A stretch of 64,000 nt of DNA from Adineta vaga (taxonomy: Eukaryota; Animalia; Rotifera). The translations under genes were made by a program, and so were the position numbers. The notes below the pieces were generated by a model. It worked only from the letters and a program-made list of their open reading frames with translations. It did no database searches and was not told the DNA's origin. The stretch is from positions 7,440,001 through 7,504,000 of the forward strand of contig CP075495.1 in NCBI GenBank assembly GCA_021613535.1. The letters are read 5' to 3'. Shown here in pieces: positions 8,719 to 29,284 of this stretch (positions are counted from its first letter, which is position 1; each line of letters begins with the position of its first letter).

Positions 8719-11110
8719 ATGATTGGTTTTAGTTCCCGATGTAATTCACTATTTCATTCCGTTGGTGCAAGAAATCTTGCTGTAAGTAGAAATTCCTCAT
8801 TGATGAAAATAGATATCACGGAAATAAATTTAGACTTCAACATGGATTCGATGTGCTAGTTCTTCATCAAAACCTGTAAGTTTGATTTTTTTACAAAAAC
8901 TACTAGAAAAGTAGATTCTTATATTTATTGTTAATAGCCAACTGTAAAAAATTGGATTGATGGAAGAGCTGTGGAATCGAAAACAAAGGATTGGATCGAA
9001 CTTACCAATCCAGTAAATAATAATATTTAGAAAATAGAAAATTTCAATAATATTTTTCCTAGGCAACCAATGAAGTTATTGGTTTAGTTCCAAAAAGTAC
9101 TCAAGAAGAAATGAATGAAGCTGTTGAAAGTTGTAAAAAAGCATTTCGTACATGGTCAAAAACAACTATTCTTCAACGACAACAAATTATGTTTCGTTAT
9201 CAAGATCTTATCAAGAAAAATATGGTTTGTCGATTCCTTTTCATCTACCCCACAAACTAAATGCGCATGTATCTATATATTTCTAGCGAAGAATTGCAGA
9301 AAATATTTCCAAAGAACAAGGAAAAACAGTTGCTGATGCAGAAGGTTCAACTTTACGTGGTTTACAAGTTGTCGAATCATGTTGTTCAGTAACATTTTTA
9401 CAAACCGGTGATACAATGCATAGCGTTGCAAAAGATATGGATATTCATAGTTATCGAGTACCATTAGGTGTTACAGCAGGGTTAGTTCCGTATCATATGA
9501 ATGAATAAAAATTTATAAAAATAACTTATGATTCTAGTATTGCACCTTTTAATTTTCCTGCAATGATTCCACTTTGGGTAAGTTGATAATGATTATTAAT
9601 GAGTATGACTAAAGACCTTTTTTCCTGTATAGATGTTCCCGGTGGCAGCTGTTTGTGGTAATACAATGTTAATGAAACCAGTAAGATGTTTTATAATAAA
9701 AGTAGACTAGTAAAATTGAAGAGTTCAACAATAGTCTGAACAAGATCCAGGTGCATGTATGATGCTTGTTGAATTAGCAAAAGAAGCTGGTTTACCTGAT
9801 GGTGTGGTGAATTGTATTCATGGTCAAAATGACGGTATAGGAAAGAAACTTTTGTATTCACATTGACTTTATGACATTGATCTTTCAGCTGTTACATTCA
9901 TCTGTGATCATCCTGATATTCGAGCTATATCATTTGTTGGTTCAGACACAGCTGTAAGAATGATTTCGATGAAAAAACCAAATTCTTTCGTGACCGAAAG
10001 TGTTTATTTAGGGTAATTATATTTACGAACGTGGTTCAAAAAATGGCAAACGTGTACAATGTAACATGGTATACAAGCATATTAACTTATTTATTTGTTT
10101 TTTAAATTATGTTTTTCATTTGATTTTAGGGCGCAAAAAATCATGGTGTTATCATGCCTGATGCTAATAAGGACCAAGCTTTAAATCAAGTATGTGGTAG
10201 AAAAGCTACTATAGTGAAGAGATAATTTCGTTTTTGTTTAGCTTCTTGGTGCAGCATTCGGTGCTGCTGGTCAACGTTGTATGGCTTTATCTACAGCTAT
10301 ATTTGTTGGTAAAGCACGAGAATGGATACCGGATTTTGTTGAAAAAGCGAAAAAATTACGTGTTAGTGCTGGTCACGAACCTACAGCTGATTTAGGACCA
10401 GTGATATCCAAGAAAGCAAAAGAACGTGTTCTTGATTTAGTTGAATCCGGTGTTAATGAAGGTGCAAAACTACTTTTAGATGGACGTAATATCAAAGTAC
10501 CCGGTTATGAAAATGGTAATTTCGTTGGACCTACAATTCTTCATGAAGTTACAGTGAGTGTTTATTTCGAAATATTTTCTGACAAATAAGTTTTTTCTCT
10601 TTCAAGCCAAACATGCAATGTTACAAGGAAGAAATCTTTGGTCCCGTACTTGTTTCAATGGCTGTTGATACGTTAGATGATGCTATTAAAGTTATCAATG
10701 ATAATCCATATGGTAATGGTACTGCTATTTTTACAACCAATGGAGCTACTGCAAGAAAGTTCACTCAAGAAATTGATGTTGGACAAGTAAATGAAAATTT
10801 GTGTGCATAATCATAGAAGAATTGAAAGAATACTTTCTTTTGTTTAGATTGGAGTCAATGTTCCAATTCCAGTTCCACTTCCCATGTTTTCATTTACTGG
10901 TTCTCGTGGTTCATTCCGTGGTGACACAAACTTCTATGGACGTAATGTAAGAAAAAACAACATCTGACATGCTTCTTTCCATTGTAAAAAATATTCTTCT
11001 CTCTCCATTAGGGAATGAACTTCTATACACAATTGAAAACAGTGACATCACAATGGCGACAAGAAGATGCAACACCAATGGATGCTCAAATGTCAATGCC
11101 AACAATGTAG
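8719..11110 (+). CDS. ALDH6A1: Methylmalonate-semialdehyde dehydrogenase (acylating), mitochondrial
   Basis: Multi-exon gene with [71 protein letters not shown] and [12 protein letters not shown]; basic N-terminal leader. Confidence 0.96.
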
Positions 11111-15443: not shown

Positions 15444-17518
15444 ATGACAATTGTATTCGCTGTAGGTTTGTTTTTAAAGTGTCTTATTGCAATCACTGAG
15501 TTTTCTTATATCTATTCCAATTATTGAAACGCGCTCAGACTATTAAAAATGAATTTTACAGTAGAATTGAAATCACTCACATTTAATCAAACATCACAGT
15601 TTCGTGAATTAGTTCAGCACATCCGTCGATGTATTCATCATCGTGCACAAACAAAAGAACAACAACATTATATGAAAATTTATTCTATAACTCATTATGT
15701 TGAACAACTCAGACGAGTTATGAATGAAAATCCATTACTAACTCGTGCACTCTTCAGATTCTATAACATCATAAAAAAGTTTTCCATATCAAATAATCGT
15801 ATGAATTTATATTTCATTGATTTAAATGACTATTTTCTTCTGTTATTGAAATGAAAAGGATTCTCTTCAACAATTGTTTTCGATCAGACAGATTCGAAAC
15901 TTAGTTTAGATGAAAAGACATCAGTTGATAATCTATATACAATTGAGCATGATACGGATCTGAAATCTGATCTATCAAAAATCAGTTTAACATTTTCTCA
16001 ATCAAATGAAGAAATTCATTTACGACCAACAAAATCGACTACTCACTATATTCAACCAACGAATATTTCTGAAGAAACAAGTGGCTTATTAACAAAAGCA
16101 ACTTTGGCTGCAATTGATAAGGTTTTCTAAGAGAATGATTTCTTCTAGCAAGAATATACCAACGAAAAAACATATTGTTATTCAAGGCAACACATCAACG
16201 TTCGTCGCGTGATATTCAAATTCTTGAACATCTACTAAATCATTGTGAAAGTTTTCGATATTTACCCACCCATGTTCGATATTATGCTGGTTAGTTAAAA
16301 TAGAATTTACTATCAATAAATTGATTTGAATATCAGCTCGTTCACTTCTACTTTTTACTTATCCATCAAATACGATTGTCACTCGTCAAAACTGTCCATC
16401 GTTTTTTGTTTATATAATTGTATCTGGTATTATTCCACTATTTTTCTCTTCAAATCTCTCTCTCTCTCTCTCTTTACAGGTCAATGTAAACTATTACTCG
16501 AAACTCAAGAAACAGCAATATTTGGTGATGAATTGAATATTGGTGATGTTTATGGTGATGATAATCTTGAGCATCATCTGAATGGATTGATTACCAATGA
16601 AACCACTCATTGCAAGTTCGTAATTTTTTCTCGAAGAGATATTCGAGTATGTTAGAAAGATTGATTTTCTAATATTGTTACCATTGAACAATACAAGGCA
16701 TATGACAATTCTTTATCTGATATGATGAAACAATCACTATTAGAACAACTTCGAGCACAATCGACATTTATTGCTCTTCACTGGCGAGATGACATCTTCG
16801 AATATTTTGTATTTTCTTGCTTTAAATTCTTTCAAATACATAAATAATTGTTTTCTTTGTAGTTAAAATGGTCGAAATATAAACAGTATTTAGCTGATGA
16901 AATAATCTATGGCAATGAAAAATATCAACATGATAATCTTTATTTTATTTTGCATGGTCAAATATCGTTTATATGTTTATTAGATTTTCCATTGATGGTA
17001 ATTGAACATCCTCAATTGAGTGAACTTTATCAAACATGGAATCATTCCGAACATAAAATGGAATCAAAAGCAAGAATTCACAAAGCTACAAAAGGTAAAA
17101 CAGCATGGCGTTTCTTGGATATTTTTAATCTTTCAAATGGACATTATTTTGGATTTGAATCAACAACAACGCATGCATGGTATCTTGCTCGAACTATTGT
17201 CGATATTATTTCCAGTAAGATTTCATCTTTTTCATTGTTTTTTCTTGTACTTCTCCTTTCTTTTAAGTTCCAAAAATTCGTTTTAAAGAACTGGGTCATT
17301 TTGCTCCCATGATATTCGAAAAACTTCGTGTAGATTTTCTTGATATTTATCCCAACGAAAATTTCATTCGTAATTCTTTTATAAAATATCTTCGTACAAA
17401 CAAATCAAATGAAAATGAACTATTAACAATGAAATTTAGTAATCAAAAGCAACGAATAGTAAGAAATAATGATAATAATATAAAGTGGATTCCTGAACAA
17501 AATCTTCTCAGTATGTAA
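15444..17518 (+). CDS. Cyclic-nucleotide-binding-domain protein (CNBD1/2-like), multi-exon
   Basis: Segments CESFRYLP...YPSNTIVTRQNCPSFFVYIIVSG|QCK...GDVYG and DNLYFILHGQI...LSNGHYFG fit two cNMP-binding beta-rolls. Splicing and frame near 16120-16150 are unclear, and the start is tentative. Confidence 0.6.
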
Positions 17519-17601
17519 AAATAAATATTCTTTAATTATCACATAAGCATATTTTCAAATAGATCAGTATAAAGAAAAACTTCATCTATCAAAAATAGAA
17601 T

Positions 17602-18802
17602 TTAAATCTTTGTTCCACGAACAACCAATCCAGCTTTCCGATAGATCTCATCAATGATTTTCATATTATGTATACCACTTGTTCCAGTTGTATACGCAAT
17701 TTCATATGCTTTATCAATCGAATCTTCCTTTTCAAAACATCTGATTGCTTCTATACATGCTCTCAATTGATAATAATAAGTTGATTGATTATCAGCATAG
17801 TTTTTTATTGTACGAGTTTGTCCATTATCTCGTTGGCGTATTGTTAAATAGTGATAAAATACTGGTGCAATCAGATATGCAATTGTAATTGTAGCACGTT
17901 CGCATTCGATAATGATTTGTTGTTTAAAAAATGACCAATCATTAGTAAATTCATTATGTATATTACATTGAATGCCATCTAATTTAAATTCGCTTCTCAT
18001 ACCATGATCAATTTGAGGATTAGTGGATGAAACTCGTAGAGGTTCTGCCTTTTGTATTTCAAATGAACCTTCATTTTGTTCAGTACGATTGTTATACGTA
18101 TTAACAATAAATCGACACATCGAAACCAAATAACAACCAATATCCATTTGAGCACCACCACCGAGCGAATATTGAAAACGAATATCATCATTTTTAAAGA
18201 ATCTTGCTGGAACAAGAAAAACACCGGTAATATTTTGAATAGCACCGATTTCATCTCTTTTGTAAGAATATCTTTCAGTGTTTCCGACAAAACGGATGAT
18301 ATCTATAATGAAAAGCTTCGACTAATAGACGATTTTGTCTTTTAGCTTCTTCAACCATTTCACGAACTTCTTCAGCATTATTTGCTAACGGTTTTTCGCA
18401 AAGAACATGTTTACCTAATCGTAAAGCTTTCATTGTCCATTCATAATGTAAACCATTCGGTAAAGGATTATAGATCATAGTAATATCGGGATCAGCTAAT
18501 AATTGATCATAGTTATCATAAACCTTAAGAAGAAGAAATGTTTGTTTTTTTGAGAAAGAATCGAACGTTCGAACTTTTACTTTGGGTATGTAATGTTTTC
18601 GGGCAAAAGCTTCTGCCTTTTGTCGATCTCTAGCAGCAATTCCATAAATCAAAACATTAGGTAATTTACTGGCGGGATTAAGTAATGCCATGTTACAAAT
18701 ATTGGCTGCACCAAGTATACCGATTATTAAAGCATCAGCTTGCTTGTGTAATTGTTTTGTATCACCACTAAAATGTGTCCATAGACGATTTAAAAGAGCC
18801 AT
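17602..18802 (-). CDS. Gfo/Idh/MocA-family oxidoreductase; one 57-nt intron, frameshift near 18255-18292
   Basis: GILGAANI, YNPLPNGLHYEW, GKHVLCEKP, EAFHYRYHP and DIRFQYSLGGGAQMDIGCY motifs. Intron at 18524-18580. The frame breaks just after HYRYHPF. Confidence 0.9.
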
Positions 18803-18837
18803 TGAATAATCTAAAAGAAATGAGAAGAAGTATGTTG

Positions 18838-19797
18838 TTAACGAATTAAACGTGATAAAGAAAATAATTTCGCAATCGGTCGATGATCACTAAAACGTAT
18901 CATCGATGTTGTCCAATAATCGATAGGTTCGATTCGACATTGATGATTTCGATATAGAATTCTATCTGTCCATGAAGAACGACGTAATGAATTATATGTA
19001 TCAGAATTTAGTTTATATTTATATGTTGGTGGAAATTTAATTGATAATTCAGAATAAGTTTTTAAGATATTCGTTTTTTCTTTTAATTCTTCTTTGTTGT
19101 CTTCAGTTTGACGATAATTTAAATCACCAAAAAGAAATAATCCATTATGTTCATTGATATTCCATTGCAGATTTTTATTTGAAGATTTGAATAACATACG
19201 TTGATGAATTGCGGAATATTGTTCATTTCTTAATTGAAAAGCTCGAAGATTTTCACCAGCTGATAAATGACAATTTAAAAAACAAAGAGATGTTCGATCG
19301 AATTCAAATCGAATACCAACACTTCCTTTATTTCCATAAATATTCATAAAACCCTGAAAAACAATTTTTTATTTAGTTTTTCTATGAAAGTGAGAAGTAC
19401 AAACGAACTGTTGGAACTTTTGAAGATGCAATAGATGAACATTGATCGAAATATGTTGAATGAACATAGATGAAAAGAATTATTCCTATATGAATAGATT
19501 TATAAATTATTAGAAAATAGTTAAGGATTTACCATTTAATCGAACATGAGATAGTAATCGATAATTTGGTAGAGTTTTTTCAATTAATTCTATCCATTGA
19601 TATTCAGACTTTTGTTGATTCGTTGTAAAAGCTAAAGGTAATTCCTGAAGACCGATCGCAATGATTTGAGGAGTAATATGTGGATAGATTAACCATGAAG
19701 AAAGATTGATATCTGAAGGTGGATAGAGTTTATGAGTATTGAATGATCCAATTAAAATTGATAGATCTGAAGAAACCTTGGATTTTGTCGCTGTCAT
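18838..19797 (-). CDS. Inositol polyphosphate 5-phosphatase (catalytic domain only), multi-exon
   Basis: IAIGLQEL, GNKGSVGIRF, CFLNCHLSAG, FLFGDLNYR, FPPTYKY, SWTDRILY and SDHRPI motifs. Confidence 0.93.
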
Positions 19798-20215
19798 TGT
19801 GTATAATAATAATAAACCTGCTTGATAAAAAAAAGAAAAGAAAGAAAAGTCTTTTTTTTCGTTCTGCTGCTTTGAATCATACATTATAGATGAATCATTG
19901 ATGTTAAGTTTTAGTAGAAAGCCTAGTAAAGACAGAATACGACAATATTTGCTTGAAAATCTAGTGACTATGGAATCTTGAAAAAGGACAGATAATTTAT
20001 TCGTACATTTACTTGAAATATAAAAATTGATTTATATATCTATATACTAAGAAATTTATTAAAAGTTTGAGTAATTATATAGATTATGAAGTTTCGCGAT
20101 GTTCATATTTATATTGAAAATAACACGATGACATTAGCATTTTTATGTAAAACGCAATGTCATTCTCCTCACATACGATAGGTACAATAAATAAAGAACA
20201 TTACTCATAGAAAAG

Positions 20216-20224
20216 TATATAAAG
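20216..20224 (+). promoter_or_regulatory. Candidate TATA box of the MDR dehydrogenase gene
   Basis: GTATATAAAG about 85 nt upstream of the ATG at 20306. Confidence 0.5.
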
Positions 20225-20305
20225 CACGCGTTTCTAGTACATAACCATCCAATTTTCTGTACGTAAAATACACTTCTTATTTCTATCGTCGATTTTATGT
20301 AAAAA

Positions 20306-21362
20306 ATGTCTAATCAAGAATACAAATTATCCGATGGTTCAGGATTTGATTCTCTTAAATTACACAAATCATCAACGATTCCTCAGCCGAATTCAGGTGA
20401 AGTTCAAATTAAATTTCATGCCTGTTCTCTTAACTATCGAGATTTACTCATCACCAAAGGATTATATCCATTATCATTGAAAGCAAATGTTGTACCATTA
20501 TCCGATGGAGCAGGTGAAATTGTAGCTGTGGGTGAAGGTGTTACACATTTGAAAATTGGTGATCGTGTTTCACCTAATTTTACTCTAGATCATATTAGAG
20601 GACAACTACCAGAAGGTGCATTTGCATCTACTCTTGGAGGTGGACATGATGGTTGTCTTCGTCAATATGGCACTTTTCGAGCTCTTAGTTGTGTGAAAAT
20701 TCCAAGTACACTTTCATACGAAGAAGCAGCAACGTTATCTTGTGCTGCTCTAACCGCTTGGAATGCTTTATACGGAATATCTGATAAAGCATTAAAACCT
20801 GGTCAAACTGTTCTTGTTCAAGGCACTGGTGGTGTAAGTCTTTTTGGTGCACAATTTGCATTAGCAGCTGGTGCAAAAGTAATTCTGACTTCATCATCTA
20901 ATAAAAAAATTGCTACTATTAAAAAAACATTTTGAAGAAAAGAATATTATGACAATTAATTATTCAGAATTTCCTGAATGGAGTACAAAAGCGAAAGAAT
21001 TAACCAATGGACGAGGTGTTGATCATATTCTCGAAGTTGGCGGTCAGAATACATTAAAACAATCAATTGAAGCACTTGCATTAGGTGGTTCTATTCATGT
21101 TATTGGATTTCTTGGTCATGGTAATGGTCCGGAAATGAGTGCATCCGAATTAGCTAGAAATACACTATATAAAAATGCTTGTATTCGTGGAGTTCTCATT
21201 GGTAGTGTTGAACAATTCAAGGCAATGAATAGTGCTATTGAAGCAAATAATATAAAACCAATTATTGATAAAGTCTTTCAATTTGAAGATGTCAAAAGTG
21301 CTTATGAATATCAATGGTCACAACAACATATCGGAAAAGTTGTGATTCAAATACCACAATAA
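20306..21362 (+). CDS. MDR-superfamily (MDR7-type) NAD(P)-dependent alcohol dehydrogenase-like protein; intronless, frameshift in A7 run at 20921-20927
   Basis: SLNYRDL, VPLSDGAGE, CAALTAWNAL, QGTGGVS, GVDHILEVGG and HIGKVVI motifs. Removing one A joins ORFs 20306-20935 and 20910-21362. Confidence 0.92.
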
Positions 21363-22754
21363 AAAAATAATAAACTTAGATAAACATTGCGATGCGTCAT
21401 TAAATTACTTGATCATTTGAATAGCTCACTCTTTGTAAATATGCGAATTTATTCAAATAAAATAAAGCAAAACAAAACAATGGATAGTCATATGGATGTT
21501 CTTCTTCAGTAGAAAAATGGATTTTTGAGATAACAAAAAACACGAAATATATTGAATATCTCCATTTTTGATTGTTTCAATGAGCTTTTCTTCCTTCATG
21601 AACATATTGCTTACCGCATGAATTGAATGACATTCGTTTATCAACTTTGTTTATGGAATTTTCCGATGTTAACATTAGTTTCGGTTCGTCAATTCGTTCA
21701 AATACATGTCTGTCTTGGATATCTATCAGTTTTTCGTCCAATATTAAAGAACATAATAATAATTGTTTAGAGATTACAAGTGATGATAATTGAGTGATAT
21801 CTAAATATTTTGCAATGGAGAACAAACAACATCTATGTGTTAGTGTCTCATTCTATTGGTTTTCATAATGATATCAATGGCATAAAAGCAAAACAAAGTC
21901 TGTTTCTAATCATCTAATAAAAATGTCTATACATTGTACGCATACAAAAGCCGTGATTAGATCTTCAAAGGAAGAGTTAAAACATTCTCTGTTGAAAATC
22001 TCTGATGAAATCTCGGATAATTCTTGTAGAATTTGTAAGTACTCATTAGAAGTTCTCCTAAACACATTTCTTTTACTAGAAGAAAAATTTCACATTGAAA
22101 TGTATTACGTGCTCAAGATGTGGATTAGAATTGAAAAAATCGGAACTTCACTCATGTAACTGAATATAGACCGCATTTCATCTTGTTCGGTAATGTTTTT
22201 ACCAAGATTAAGAATACAGCTACTGACGCAATTATCAAAATAGTACGGAAAAGAATTTTAAAATGTATCTTAATAAATGATAATCGAACTCATGAGCTCA
22301 TCTGATGATTAAATCGACACCTGCGATTATGAAGCTAAATAGTTCGTTTTAAGTGACCTGAATAATGGGTCTTTCAATAAAAAATAAAACAAATAGCGAC
22401 TTGAACGCTGAAATTAATTGTAATCATATCTTCTGTATCGAAAAATAGGCTATTCTTTTATTAGTTCATTAGAAGTACCAAAACAAAATATATCAATTCT
22501 TGGATCGAACGTAATATTTTTCATTGCAATATGTTAATTGAAGTCTATTGGAAATTTCAGCAAATATACAGCTGCATTGATGGAGAAAAGGAACAATTAT
22601 CTAATAGACTACCGGACGTGAGCGACTTATTGAATTACAGAGATATTTATTAATTCGTCTCTGGTACCTTAATGAAAATTTTCAATCGAACAATTCCTAT
22701 TTTCAATATTAGCTGTTGTTCCTCAATAAGAGTTATATCGCATATAGTAAACCA

Positions 22755-23316
22755 TGACGTTTCTTCATGGCATAAAAGGAACAACTGGCAATGTACCATT
22801 TTTTTGGTGGTGGTCGAAAACGATATGTGTGGAACTTTCTAAGTGCGCATTCATTTTTAAATGATAAAAAGTTTTTAAATTTGCTGTATTTTTATTCAGT
22901 TAAAGTAAGTGATGAATATAATGGACATCGATCACAATGGCAGCTTAGTGGAATGGAAAGGCCATTGTTTGTTATATCAATGGTGTTCGATCGATTGAAA
23001 AAGCTCTCGCCACATTTGGTAACGATGGTCGTTTTCAAAGTTGGTGTTGTCTCGCTTGTAAGTACGTATTTTCGATATGTTATTCGTTATAATGATAAGA
23101 TTTTCGTTGTTGTTTAGATTACATTTACTGTCAAATTGGTTTCGGTTATTAGGTCAATGTAGTAATGCATGTCTAATACAATTCTATGATCCATTGAATA
23201 GTTGTTTCCGTGAAGAAAAACTGAATCAATTCATCGTCAATATTTTAGAATCTGTTGAAGATTTTGGGTTTGCTCATTTGGAACCGGCATTACTCAAAGG
23301 TCTTGCTGGTATTTAA
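22755..23316 (+). pseudogene. RUN-domain gene fragment, frame-disrupted
   Basis: FLHGIK...FFWW, GRFQSWCCLA and LHLLSNWFRLL...FYDP..SCFREE resemble the RUN core blocks. Intron-like gaps are present, but frames shift around 22840-22960. Confidence 0.5.
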
Positions 23317-24275
23317 ATCTTTGGTCTATTTCTTTCGATCGTGTGAACTATTTTTTTGTTGTTGTGTTTGTCTGTATATAAAGTCCAACAAACAACAGTG
23401 TCATACACAAAAACCGAGTCGGCCTTCTTTCGTTGCAATACAATATATTTCTTTTTCTTTTTTCAATCATTAAATAAATATATATGAACTATTTCAGCGA
23501 TGCTTCCTTCTTTAAAATCAATCGGATGTAACTATCATTGTTATGGATAGGTAGAGAATGGCAATGGTCTTTCTCATCAAATTGAATGGGCGTTAAGGCA
23601 TGACTATATGTGATGAATGTTGAACATAATTTATAAAGCATATTAGATTATTGTGTTGAACAACATGTATGGTTTTCTATAATCAAGTGTTATTGACAAA
23701 TTATTAGCCAAAAGAAAAAGTTGAAATTATGAACTTCAACTATTCTTGCGCACCAATCAACGAATCATGTAAGATGAATTATGAAGACATTAGTATTTTT
23801 CATTCAGTTTAGTTTCGGTTGAATCTATTGTGTGAAAGAATGACAACAAAAGATAGAATAAATAGAATGATCCATTGAATCATGTCGATTTAGTGTCAAT
23901 AAATCTGTATGCAATAGAGAAATAAACATTTGCTACTATACTTACTTTTACACTAAAGTCCATTTCTAAATTTTTCTCCTATGGACACTAACTAATCTTG
24001 TGTTCTACACGACGATAGAGAAAAAAAAGAAAATCACTTTCTTTTGCATTTTATTGTTTTGCATCGCGTGTATACACATGATCTAGGCTATCTTAAACGA
24101 ATGATTCGTCTCTTCTACATTGACTGAATTTCGTTATGGCAAAACGAAAAGCATTTTCGATCATTTTACTTCTTTTCTATTTGAAAAACGTAATATAATG
24201 GATATTAAACCATTCGATTTCTCTGTCTATATAACGTGTGTATATTCTTTTTTCTTTTCAGCTTGTTAACTCGCC

Positions 24276-27200
24276 ATGCTATCTATTACAGATACATACA
24301 ACCGTCAATGTTCATACTATTATAATGAAATTTCAGAACATATCCCAGAACCACGGGTAAAACAGTTTTTTTTAGTTCTTTTGCATAGAACATAGGTACA
24401 CATCAATCGTACCGTTCAATTGAACTAGAGTCATCTTCTTTTTAAGATCATTTGAATTTTAATGCATTAATGATGTTGCTCAATGCAACTTGTTAATCGT
24501 ATCGTCTTAGGCAGAGATGGGCAGCTCCGACTCCGGAGCGACCGCTCCATGGAGCTAGCTCCGCTCCAGGAGCGGAGCTGGAGTGGAGCGATACATTGGA
24601 ACGTCGGAGCTGGAGTGGAGTCGGAGCGACTTTTTATTTTCAATTTAGCTTCCGCTCCTTTTTTTTCTTCAGTGTTCTCATGCGATACATAGAAAAATGA
24701 ATGAAAAAAAGGCTGGTCATTGTACGCTCGTCACATTTATTATCTTGTTCTTGCTTTTACGTCATTGACGGGATCTCAGACAATGAATGACCGCCCATTT
24801 ACGATCTTTTTATCTGACTAATTGGCTGACATATCGTAAATTTCAGACAGAAAAATAAGGTTACGCCCAAGAGAAAAAAGACATGATATAAAATGCGACA
24901 CGTGACCGGTGTATAATCAGAACAATATCTCTCAGCTAAATACGAATTGAACAAAAACGATTATCATGGAAACACAAACACATGATCTTCACATCGATGA
25001 ATTATCTCCTGTTACTATCGTCGATAATAACGATTCAATATCGAAGAACAATGAAAAAAAAGGTAATACTATTCTTGAAAAGTTCTTCGAGGATATGAAA
25101 ACGCACGAAGACGGCTCGAAATCTGCCAAATGCGTATTATGCGATACGATCGTTAAACAATCCACAACATCAACCTATAATTATGGGCGTCATGTTCAGC
25201 GTAAACACAAGACGGATATGGAATTATGGAAGGCCGAATCAGAATCCAGAAAAGCAGATGATAAGAAGAAACAACCGACAATTCACCAATCATTTGGTAA
25301 TCGATGTAAGTTTGTTAATTAGAAGTGTACATACATTTATGTTCATTTTAGTGAACGAGAAATATAGTGCTCGTAGTGGTCGTCAACTAGAACTTACTCA
25401 AATGATTGTACACGACTTAATAATTGATTTGGGATTACCATTATCTGTTGTCGATCATCCAGCATTTCTACGTGCAATGAACATTGTAGATCCAAGGTTT
25501 ACTGTCATGTCTCGGCGTACTCTTTGTCGTGAAATATTACCATCAACTCTTGATCGTATCATGGCGAAAGTAAAACAAGATTGTAAGAATGCGAAGTTTG
25601 TAGCGTTAACGCTAGATGTCTGGACAGACCGTAGAATGCGCGCGTTTATTGCGATTACCATGCACAAAGTTAATGATAGTGATGGATCGACTGAAAATTG
25701 TCTTTTAACGTTTCAACCTCTTTCAGGTAAGTTGATATACGTTGCTATAATATTTGTAAAAGCATCTATTTTAGGACCACATACTGGTGAAAACTTACGT
25801 CGACAGCTTGAAGATACTATTGCGGCTTTTAATATAGAAGAAAAGTTAGTCAGAATTGTTACGGATAATGCATCAAACAATCTCAAAGCATTTGATGAAC
25901 TTGTAATACCTGGTTTTGAAGTTTATTTTGAACCCGAAGACGATGACGACGAACATGATGATGATGATGATGATTCACCCGAGAATGGTGAAAATGATGA
26001 ACAAGTTGATGGAACAGATCAAGAAGAACGACTTCGTATTCCCTGTTTTTCACACACGTTACAACTTGTAGTTGGTGATGGATTGAAGGGCTGTGAGACT
26101 GCAAAATCATCTCTTGCCAAAGTTGCAGCAATAGCAAAACTTAGGTAAGATGACGAAGAAAATTTCTAGTAATATAAATTTTCACTCAGAGAAATTATCA
26201 CTGTATTAATAACTTTGTCTGTTCTAGTCACAAATCGTCATTATTTGCGGAAAATTTGCAAAAAGAAAACATTAGTATTCCAATAGCTGTTAAGACAAGA
26301 TGGAATTCTCAACATCATACCATTTGCAAAATTCTTGAAATATCTCACGCATTACTCAACGATTTATTGCGCAATGTTGGTCGTTCTGATCTTATTCTCA
26401 CGGCTCGTGATATTATTATTCTTCAGGAATTTGCTAGTATTTTTGCTTTATTCGCTGAAGCTACAACACGTTCACAAGCTGAAAAAACTGCTTCAATTTC
26501 GTTAGTTGCACCAAGCATTCTTTCTATTTATTTTGATCTCGAACGAGAACGTACTAATTGCAAATATCTTGGATCACTCTGTCGTACATTACTCAACTCT
26601 TTACATGAACGATTTGGTGGCCTTCTTGAACGATGCGAAGTCTTTGCTGATGATAATATTAAGATAAAGAAACTTTCTACATACGACCTTTACAAAGATG
26701 ATCTTTTCTTAATTGCGCCTTTTCTGGATGGTCGATTCAAGCTCAGCTGGGTGCTCGCATCTGATCTGCCTGATTCAGCAAAAGAACACTTAACAAATAC
26801 GATTAAAATACTTATATCAAAAGCGGCGTTGCAATTATATGGCTCACTAAATCATATGTTAGATTCGGATACGGAATCGTCTGCTACTGATCGTTGTGCT
26901 ACTGAAGATGAATCATTGAACAATTTACCAAGCTTCAAACGAAAACGGCTATTTTCCGGTTATGAAGGACAAAAAACACCGGCAAAGAAGAAACGTTCAT
27001 GCATCTCAGAAGCAATCGCAGGTGAAGTTTGTATGTTTGAAAAGGAAGATAATGGTGATTCTACTTTGGTCTTCAAAAAGAAAAATGCTTATCCATATTT
27101 ACAACAGCTTGCCACTAGAGTATTTTGTATACCTGCCACGTCCGCACCAGTTGAACGCGTGTTTTCTTCAAGTGGAATATTAATGCGTCCTCATCGTAGT

Positions 27201-28561
27201 CGATTATCGAAGAATACGCTTTCATTGCTCACTTTATTAAAATGTAATCGTCACTTGTTGTAGTTTACTAATCTATTTAATATGGCTACTAATGTGTTTC
27301 ATATTGTATTCTCGCTAAGTTAAATATATAGTTAATCAGTGTTTTTTGGTACTTCATATACATGCATTTATATGTAGACTAAGATGAGAGATTCAGTGAA
27401 CATGACTAATCATAAAGCATAATCAAGAAAATTTGATTTAGGAGCGGAGTCGAAACAGAGCTGGAGCGGGGTCGGAGCGAATTTTTTAAATTAAAGCTAG
27501 AGCTGGAGCTGAGCTGGAGCGGCTATTATTCATTGGGAGCGGAGTCGAAAGTCTATTTTTCTATATTGAGCGGAGTCGGAGAGGAGCGGTCTGATATTGT
27601 TTGGAGCTGGAGCTGAGCTGGAGATCGAAAGGGTCGGAGCTGCCCATCTCTGGTCTTAGGCTTCAAACAGACAGAAAAAAATCCGTCGGATTAAAATTGA
27701 ACTAAAGAGAAAATCGTCGAGAATACACGATTTAAGTCCAAACAGACCAATCACGTTAATATTTCAACCTTAAGTTAATTCACTTTTCTCTTCCTGTTTG
27801 ACCCTTAGTGTTTTTTATGCCTAAAATTAATTGGACAAGAATGTGATCCTTTGTTTTTATTGTCTATGTTTCTTCATATAAAATGTAAACAAATTCAGAT
27901 CGATACCATTATTTTCAAATACTTTATTTGTTGTCATTATGTGTATTCAAGAGCAAGTATGTGAAAAATAGAAGTTCTTTTCTGTTTAGTCAACGTATAA
28001 GTGGCAGATGTCAATCGCTAGTGATGGAAAGTTCAGAATAGCCTGTACATTCGAATAGACAGTTTCTTCTAAGGATCATAATAAGTTGTCTCTTTAATTT
28101 TTAAATTATTAATAAAACGTCACAGCTTGTATTTGTTTCTTTTTCAGGCAATTCGTTATTCATCCAGCAACGTCACCGGTCGATTCCCGGATACTTTCGG
28201 ACATCGTTGGCAAGGTGTTGTAATTGAAAACCTTTACTTAACTCTTTACTTATTCTTCCTACGTTTAGAAGCTGCAAATCACCTTCAAAAAATCGCTCAT
28301 CCATTTGGCTCAATTATTAAAATTGATATAACACGATCACAAAATGATATTGGGTTTCTCAGCTTTGTCATTTTGTAAATTTTTAATTGTTATAATACCT
28401 GTACTTTTCAAGTAGATATTTCTTTTTCTTTTAGTTATGATGATGTAGCTGCAGCAAAAAAATTTGTCGAAGTGATTCAAGCATTAAGTTACTGGACATC
28501 TGGTCCCATCATTCTACTATCATTGGCTTATCAGGAAACGCCTCGACAAAATGAAGACTAA
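24276..28561 (+). CDS. Small RRM-like protein gene; intron 1 carries the hAT element
   Basis: Exon 24276-24356 (phase 0) joins exon 28148 onward, then 28435-28561. PFGSIIKIDI...GFLSFVIFYDDVAAAKK resembles RNP1 and helix 2 of an RRM. Confidence 0.6.
24512..27652 (+). mobile_element. Full-length hAT-superfamily DNA transposon (3141 bp)
   Basis: Perfect 20-bp TIRs CAGAGATGGGCAGCTCCGAC (24512-24531 and 27633-27652). Identical 8-bp TSD GTCTTAGG (24504-24511 and 27653-27660). Subterminal GGAGC/GCTCC arrays at both ends. Confidence 0.98.
24966..27263 (+). CDS. hAT transposase (BED zinc finger, DDE, dimerisation domain), 4 exons, 706 aa
   Basis: Exons 24966-25305, 25352-25726, 25775-26144 and 26228-27263 splice in frame (2121 nt). 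Has CVLC...HVQRKH, TLDVWT, VTDNASN, CFSH, KTRWNS and PATSAPVERVFS. Confidence 0.96.
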
Positions 28562-29284
28562 ATGAAATATTTTGTTTTTCTTATTATAAGAGAAAACCAG
28601 TTATCCACTTGACTCATCTCATTTTGTTATTGTCAACTAAAAGAAATAAACAAAAAACTTTATTATATTTCGAAAAAATAAAGAAACCAATTTTCTGTCT
28701 AGACGAAGACAATCATAATTTCTTCAATTTTTTAGTGTTGTTCTAAATATCTAGGTAATCATACATACTGTACTGTTCGTTCCATTGCTGAGGAGTAATG
28801 GCATATCAATTATTTAGCCAATTAACACTATTCTCTTTAGATCATTATCAGGATATTTAATAATTAATTGGTAGTTTCGGGAAGAAATATATGGCTCAAA
28901 TTATTCTCTTTCTTTCGTTTGGACGCTAGATGTACACGTTGATGGTGGCGCATTTTTTTATATGTTCATGATTGGTGAGATGAATTGTACCATTCTAAAT
29001 AATATATAATATCACATCTTTCACACACACTCACACTAACTAACGATATGATAAGCCTATGACTATGACTATAAAGAATGTAGATGTAGATGTAGATATA
29101 CAATTACATTTTTTCAATTTGAATCAATCTCTATTGTATAAAATGTGAATACAGATCTGAACTACATGTTTGTAATCTATTCAGATAGTGAAAAAAACAG
29201 ATTTTGACGAAAATAGTAGACAAGATGTTTGTAGTCTATATTGAAATGTACTGTTTTAGATATTTATATTAAAAGAAAGATCCA

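Follow-up and report, generated by a model that had tools for sequence, protein, structure and literature searches.

An INPP5-like gene and a Gfo/Idh/MocA oxidoreductase gene separated by 35 nt and a putative trans-splice acceptor form a candidate operon in Adineta vaga, a bdelloid rotifer

The DNA analysed here is a 64-kb window of the Adineta vaga genome (positions 7,440,001-7,504,000 of the chromosome-scale contig 2 in the 100.8-Mb, six-contig assembly that was used for genome searches), and the coordinates below are those of this window. Two genes lie side by side on its minus strand. The upstream gene (18838-19797) encodes an INPP5-like protein made up of the catalytic domain only, with a 285-codon frame (285 aa) running from the ATG at 19797 to the TAA at 18840-18838. 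Sequence reading divided this gene into three exons (19797-19533, 19485-19409 and 19353-18838), and both introns between them (19532-19486, 47 nt; 19408-19354, 55 nt) have GT..AG borders and were spliced out in RNA contigs of three to four runs. A Pfam search of exon 3 returned Exo_endo_phos2 at 2e-37, and INPP5B, OCRL and synaptojanin were the nearest solved structures in a PDB search. These comparisons confirmed the predicted product of the upstream gene as an inositol polyphosphate 5-phosphatase catalytic domain. A paralogue of this gene on A. vaga chromosome 1 is 32-44% identical, and its 3.1-kb locus carries no oxidoreductase gene.

The downstream gene (17602-18802) encodes a Gfo/Idh/MocA oxidoreductase that resembles dihydrodiol dehydrogenase. 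It starts with the ATG at 18802-18800 and ends with the TAA at 17604-17602, and its two exons (18802-18581 and 18523-17602) flank an intron of 57 nt (18580-18524) that was spliced out in three runs. The A. vaga exons were searched separately, and the full-length orthologue from A. ricciae (P0002) was used as the whole-protein query. Pfam matches to GFO_IDH_MocA (8e-19) and GFO_IDH_MocA_C3 were obtained. The identities that the earlier note had assigned to the two genes are thus backed by the Pfam and PDB searches. Orthologues of the oxidoreductase from A. ricciae, A. steineri and Rotaria species are 381-382 aa long and 73-81% identical over the C-terminal 225 aa. No second copy was found in A. 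vaga, where the next best matches were paralogues of 27-33% identity.

The reading frame of the oxidoreductase gene is broken in the reference, a feature that the earlier reading had missed. Between 18257 and 18285, two single bases are lacking, one after plus-strand position 18284 and one after 18257. Both bases were present as insertions in every RNA contig that covers the region (runs X1, X2 and X11; three runs from two studies), and restoring them gave a frame colinear with the A. ricciae orthologue and a product of 381 aa in RNA. Because the RNA contigs supply both missing bases, the two frame breaks are errors of the reference assembly and the true product is 381 aa long; the alternative that the gene is a pseudogene with two frameshifts was rejected for the same reason. 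The NCBI model of the gene (I4U23_008070, 339 aa) skips 42 residues at 18257-18285. On the practical side, this analysis therefore flags two reference errors that shorten an annotated A. vaga protein. At the other end of the gene, the oxidoreductase stop lies about 83 nt from the stop of a convergent plus-strand gene (17,519-17,602), so that, judging from this distance, the predicted 3' UTRs of the two genes must be very short if they do not overlap. The stretch 17,377-17,597, across the convergent 3' ends, is covered by RNA contigs.

The two minus-strand genes are less than 100 nt apart. The TAA of INPP5 and the ATG of the oxidoreductase gene are separated by a spacer of 35 nt (18803-18837), read directly from the genome, and most of it is occupied by a pyrimidine tract that ends in an AG at 18812-18811 (18811-18830). 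If this AG served as a spliced-leader (SL) acceptor, as proposed here, 18810 would be the first base of the exon, with the ATG 8 nt further on, and the cut would fall 27 nt after the INPP5 stop. The earlier note had placed the stop at 18838, the AG at 18812-18811 and the ATG 8 nt further on, and these positions proved exact to the base on reading the minus strand. Its further statement, that the gap has no AATAAA and no strong donor nearby, also agreed with the spacer sequence, in which AATAAA and GT are both absent and the sole G is that of the acceptor AG. AATAAA is likewise absent from the last 90 nt of the A. vaga INPP5 gene taken together with the spacer. The whole 64-kb window was scanned with a pattern describing this junction (a long open frame and its stop, followed within 100 nt by a pyrimidine tract with AG, with a long ORF whose ATG comes no more than 10 nt later). 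Two places matched, the INPP5/oxidoreductase junction and 10587-10613 on the plus strand; the latter was rejected as a second such junction, being an ordinary intron within an aldehyde dehydrogenase gene.

Bdelloids have been known to trans-splice an SL since 2005. Its published sequence, 23 nt long, is GGCTTATTACAACTTACCAAGAG and has the 3' end GAG (PMC3795323). In the A. vaga genome, we found 42 SL RNA genes, each a copy of the SL exon with a GT donor behind it. The general premise of the earlier note, that bdelloids perform SL trans-splicing, is therefore secure from these copies and from the published evidence (PMC3795323, PMC1925144). The copies lie on contigs 1, 2, 4, 5 and 6, mainly clustered on contig 5 (e.g. 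at 9,884,354-9,925,971), many of them as inverted pairs about 157 nt apart; the genomic copies start with TGC and the published SL with GGC. Since the SL ends in AG, an SL-joined oxidoreductase mRNA and the genome would share the AG and the exon and would diverge at 18813. A comparable acceptor may also exist for the first gene. A long pyrimidine tract ending in AG/CAG (19818-19850) lies about 20 nt 5' of the INPP5 ATG and is likely to be the trans-splice acceptor of INPP5, to judge from its sequence; the acceptor of the A. ricciae INPP5 gene lies 7 nt upstream of the ATG. Upstream of the A. vaga INPP5 ATG, RNA of run X11 extends to about 20,096, and the contigs of X1 and X2 end near the ATG.

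RNA evidence was drawn from Logan contigs (k=31) of four runs from three studies, aligned to 16,800-21,500; RNA ends, strand and single molecules are not readable from such contigs. In these data, all three introns of the pair were spliced out with GT..AG borders on the minus strand, and the depth in silent neighbouring stretches was zero. These observations indicate that the runs represent RNA and that both genes are expressed, and the zero depth in the silent stretches shows that the coverage is not due to genomic DNA. One X11 contig (contig 12, 1054 nt) contained oxidoreductase exon 2, the spliced intron, exon 1, the 35-nt gap, 515 nt of INPP5 exon 3 and the spliced INPP5 intron 2 in a single run of sequence, which, for a k=31 contig, is no proof of one molecule. 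The depth over the gap was similar to that over the genes themselves. RNA colinear across the acceptor exists in X11.

Runs X1 and X2 belong to a different study from X11, and their contigs behaved differently at the junction. Their oxidoreductase contigs, fully aligned, ended at 18811 (X1) and 18812 (X2). On the other side of the break, an INPP5 contig of X1 ended at 18814, 2 nt before the AG; this contig is shallow (depth 3.6) and carries no poly(A) letters, and its end is a contig end rather than an RNA end. The INPP5 and oxidoreductase contigs of X1 do not overlap, and every 31-mer that includes 18812-18813 is missing from that run. A mixture of SL-joined and unspliced forms would be expected to produce a fork in the assembly graph at 18812; the X2 contig ends exactly there, and the X1 end at 18811 is one base short of it. 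The breaks at the acceptor are thus suggestive of such a fork. SL letters at 18810 were found in none of the Logan contigs from the four runs. Loose contig ends seen at 18848 and 19331 were considered as alternative continuations and rejected as an alignment artefact, because both trace to an unrelated contig whose own locus, on the same chromosome but 3.4 Mb distant, has just 18-24 nt in common with the window. RNA contigs encoding full-length orthologues were likewise sought in protein collections, and none was present, all orthologues coming from genome assemblies. An exact-pattern scan of metagenomes (the SL 3' end, 0-10 nt and the conserved ORF start) gave 11 matches, all of which were internal to long contigs and are attributable to chance.

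These contigs also bear on whether the acceptor is used in cis. Its sequence makes it a good general 3' splice site. Either an INPP5 exon or one from a 5' UTR might be joined to 18810, giving an SL-free oxidoreductase mRNA or a fusion or isoform of the two proteins, and a very short upstream exon might escape contig assembly. No joint from any donor, whether in an INPP5 exon or a 5' UTR exon, to 18810 or 18811 occurred in the four runs, yet all three true introns were recovered from the same data. In addition, no loose end was found at the acceptor, and the annotated orthologues of the pair are separate proteins of 281-299 aa and 381-382 aa. We consider cis use of the acceptor very unlikely. 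The earlier note had named a cis-spliced 5' UTR intron and an INPP5-oxidoreductase fusion as the outcomes that would overturn its proposal, and neither was found in the contigs of the four runs.

A further arrangement to be weighed against the RNA evidence is a stable dicistronic mRNA that is itself functional, from which the oxidoreductase would be translated by reinitiation or leaky scanning while the acceptor-like tract goes unused. The X11 contig would agree with such a molecule, being colinear over the gap with its introns spliced and a depth like that of the genes. The breaks of the X1 and X2 contigs at the AG would then have no explanation, nor would the presence of a tract and AG at the ATG in every lineage (see below), and scanning would be blocked by the many AUGs inside the INPP5 frame. 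This arrangement appears, if anything, slightly less credible than cis use of the acceptor.

The layout of the junction was then compared across bdelloids by tracing the oxidoreductase orthologues to their contigs. The two genes lie on the same strand in about ten bdelloid lineages, with stop-to-ATG gaps of 0-75 nt, and INPP5 is directly upstream on the same strand in every lineage in which it is intact. The gap is 35 nt in A. vaga, 36 nt in A. ricciae, 50 nt in A. steineri and 69 nt in Rotaria sp. Silwood1, where INPP5 is intact. Gaps of 0 nt (JGI metagenome contig L026, 3300024984), 21 nt (ENA contig L032), 22 nt (ENA contig L029), 38 nt (Logan contig L011) and 75 nt (Logan contigs L030/L031) were found in further contigs. 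At the 0-nt junction (L026, 2620-2625), the INPP5 stop TAG abuts the ATG, the AG of the stop is the acceptor AG and the pyrimidine tract is located inside the coding sequence. In all lineages, the ATG is preceded at a distance of 0-8 nt by a pyrimidine- or T-rich tract with AG, which is flush with it in all except A. vaga and A. ricciae. Only the long spacers, those of 69 and 75 nt, contain AATAAA, and no poly(A) signal of INPP5 was recognisable in the species with short gaps. The earlier note had looked to conserved spacing in related species for support, and the tiny spacer with an acceptor at the ATG is indeed kept in Adineta, Rotaria and other bdelloid contigs. The downstream neighbourhood, consisting of the convergent gene, a p8-like gene and an aldehyde dehydrogenase gene, is syntenic too, and gene order alone is therefore weak evidence. 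What is informative is how small the spacer is and that it carries an acceptor, rather than the order of the genes.

In R. socialis and R. magnacalcarata, INPP5 has decayed to fragments with stops at 34-43% identity (3454-4000 in contigs L009/L010 and 2380-3000 in contigs L033-L035), and the oxidoreductase gene and its flush acceptor are intact behind the INPP5 remnant. On the promoter side of INPP5, A. vaga has about 9 kb more DNA than A. ricciae (about 19,830-28,920), lying between the TIG/Sec5 gene and INPP5; the junction itself is untouched. This DNA includes a hAT transposase-like gene in split plus-strand ORFs (zf-BED, 24966-25322; DUF659-like, 25183-26148; hAT dimerisation, 26256-27263). 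A zinc-type (MDR) alcohol dehydrogenase gene, divergent from INPP5, is also part of this DNA, at 20306-21362 on the plus strand, and is absent from the matching position in A. ricciae; it is read as two overlapping ORFs near 20,910-20,935, where an A-rich run, outside the coverage of the RNA contigs, marks either an assembly indel or a true frameshift.

The comparison is relevant to a different organisation of the locus, in which the pair would consist of two overlapping units: the oxidoreductase gene would have its own promoter inside the INPP5 gene body, a short outron would be removed by the SL, and INPP5 would end independently. The acceptor, the contig breaks and the colinear RNA would fit such an internal promoter equally well, and overlapping k-mers may come from different molecules. 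Also in its favour are the difference between A. vaga and A. ricciae on the INPP5 promoter side and the fact that, in R. socialis and R. magnacalcarata, the oxidoreductase gene has outlived the INPP5 ORF. However, such a promoter would need to have persisted within constrained coding sequence in about ten lineages, including the one with the 0-nt gap, and the X11 contig extends without a break into INPP5, over 515 nt of exon 3 and a spliced intron. Consequently, an internal promoter seems unlikely to us, if far less so than either cis use of the acceptor or a stable dicistronic mRNA.

Bdelloids carry many foreign genes, and the earlier note had regarded the oxidoreductase gene as probably foreign. 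With the A. ricciae protein as the query, the best relatives outside bdelloids scored about 245-270 bits and were those of Mortierellomycota and Agaricomycetes (36-40% identity) and of bacteria, Myxococcota among them (41-45%). Among the best 120 matches, bdelloid rotifers were the only named animals, and the monkey dihydrodiol dehydrogenase (DHDH) scored 84 bits against about 270 for the fungal and bacterial matches. A tree was constructed from 28 rows that were hand-picked from the 120 matches and include no animal rows. In this tree, the bdelloid proteins formed a clade (100/100) on a long branch of 0.99, outside the fungal clade (95/93) and beside, not within, a bacterial group. Since the nearest relatives outside rotifers are fungal and bacterial, a non-animal origin of the gene is plausible, with no donor placed by the tree. 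Hence, the taxonomy of the best matches agrees with the earlier suggestion, and the tree adds no placement within a donor clade.

Our preferred reading, to which we assign a probability of roughly 65%, is that INPP5 and the oxidoreductase gene form a dicistron of the Ciona type that is resolved by SL trans-splicing; from the evidence above, we infer SL use at the site, a single precursor and the lack of a separate promoter. The proposal of the earlier note that a dicistronic transcript is resolved by trans-splicing gains from the SL RNA genes, the conserved layout, the X11 RNA across the gap and the X1 and X2 breaks at the acceptor, and the part of it that concerns the joint itself is without a counterpart in the contigs, where the SL letters do not appear. 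The dicistron also draws support from the junction left untouched beside the extra 9 kb and from the acceptor kept behind the INPP5 remnant in R. socialis and R. magnacalcarata; what speaks against it, besides the missing SL letters, is that INPP5 has no recognisable poly(A) signal in the short-gap species and that the papers found give operons as unreported in rotifers. Under the dicistron reading, the two genes would be one transcription unit that starts upstream of INPP5, and the primary transcript would be cis-spliced. The 23-nt SL would be trans-spliced to the acceptor at 18812-18811, so that the oxidoreductase mRNA would be capped and would begin 8 nt upstream of its ATG. The INPP5 mRNA would end at or within a few bases of the acceptor, or would read on into the next gene. 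One precursor would probably give rise to either the upstream or the downstream mRNA and not to both, as has been argued for Ciona (PMC1488885).

A wider proposal may be built on the dicistron reading, and we put it forward tentatively, as one that we would stop a little short of favouring. Bdelloids may have true gapless polycistronic operons, and a foreign gene may have been domesticated behind a native gene, with the SL supplying both its cap and its 5' terminus. INPP5 would later have decayed to an outron in R. socialis and R. magnacalcarata, where the foreign gene alone would now use the unit.

Operons resolved by an SL are familiar from nematodes, tunicates, chaetognaths and Hydra. In rotifers, operons are unreported according to the papers found (PMC7986045), and the gapless type represented by the A. 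vaga pair would probably be new for this phylum. Because the pair persists in both Adineta and Rotaria, and its gap can shrink to zero, it would help to establish operons in another animal phylum, and it would bear on whether gapless operons have originated more than once.

Operons without intercistronic DNA were described in Ciona intestinalis by Satou et al. in 2006 (PMC1488885). In these operons, AATAAA is usually missing from the upstream cistron, RNA carrying both cistrons can be detected, and one SL serves both monocistronic and operon genes (PMC1488885). The A. vaga pair is similar in that same-strand genes are directly juxtaposed and AATAAA is absent from the end of the upstream gene. 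It differs in phylum and in SL sequence, and also in that the SL junctions and poly(A) sites of Ciona were mapped on cDNA clones, whereas the A. vaga pair is known from the genome and RNA contigs. The SL1-type operons of C. elegans, to which the earlier note had compared the pair, also show little intercistronic sequence, or none, and use a general SL rather than an operon-specific one (as cited in PMC1488885), the latter being proposed for the A. vaga pair as well. Furthermore, forming the upstream 3' end and trans-splicing the downstream gene may be mutually exclusive on each SL1-type precursor (PMC1488885). The comparison is apt in these respects, but in the characterised SL1-type cases the upstream gene carries a canonical AATAAA (PMC1488885), unlike A. 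vaga, and because this signal is absent from the end of INPP5 and the spacer, the Ciona type fits better.

One gene of the bicistronic RFC140-flp operon of Hydra was acquired by horizontal transfer (Dana et al. 2012, PMC3273482). There, as in the A. vaga candidate, an apparently non-animal gene occupies the downstream position of a two-gene unit in an animal that performs SL trans-splicing. The Hydra operon was tested with transgenes in Hydra, whereas that of A. vaga is a candidate whose downstream gene is plausibly foreign, to judge from best matches and a tree. The downstream slot of an SL-resolved unit would offer a simple route to expression for a promoterless foreign ORF, and Hydra provides the one precedent that we found (PMC3273482).
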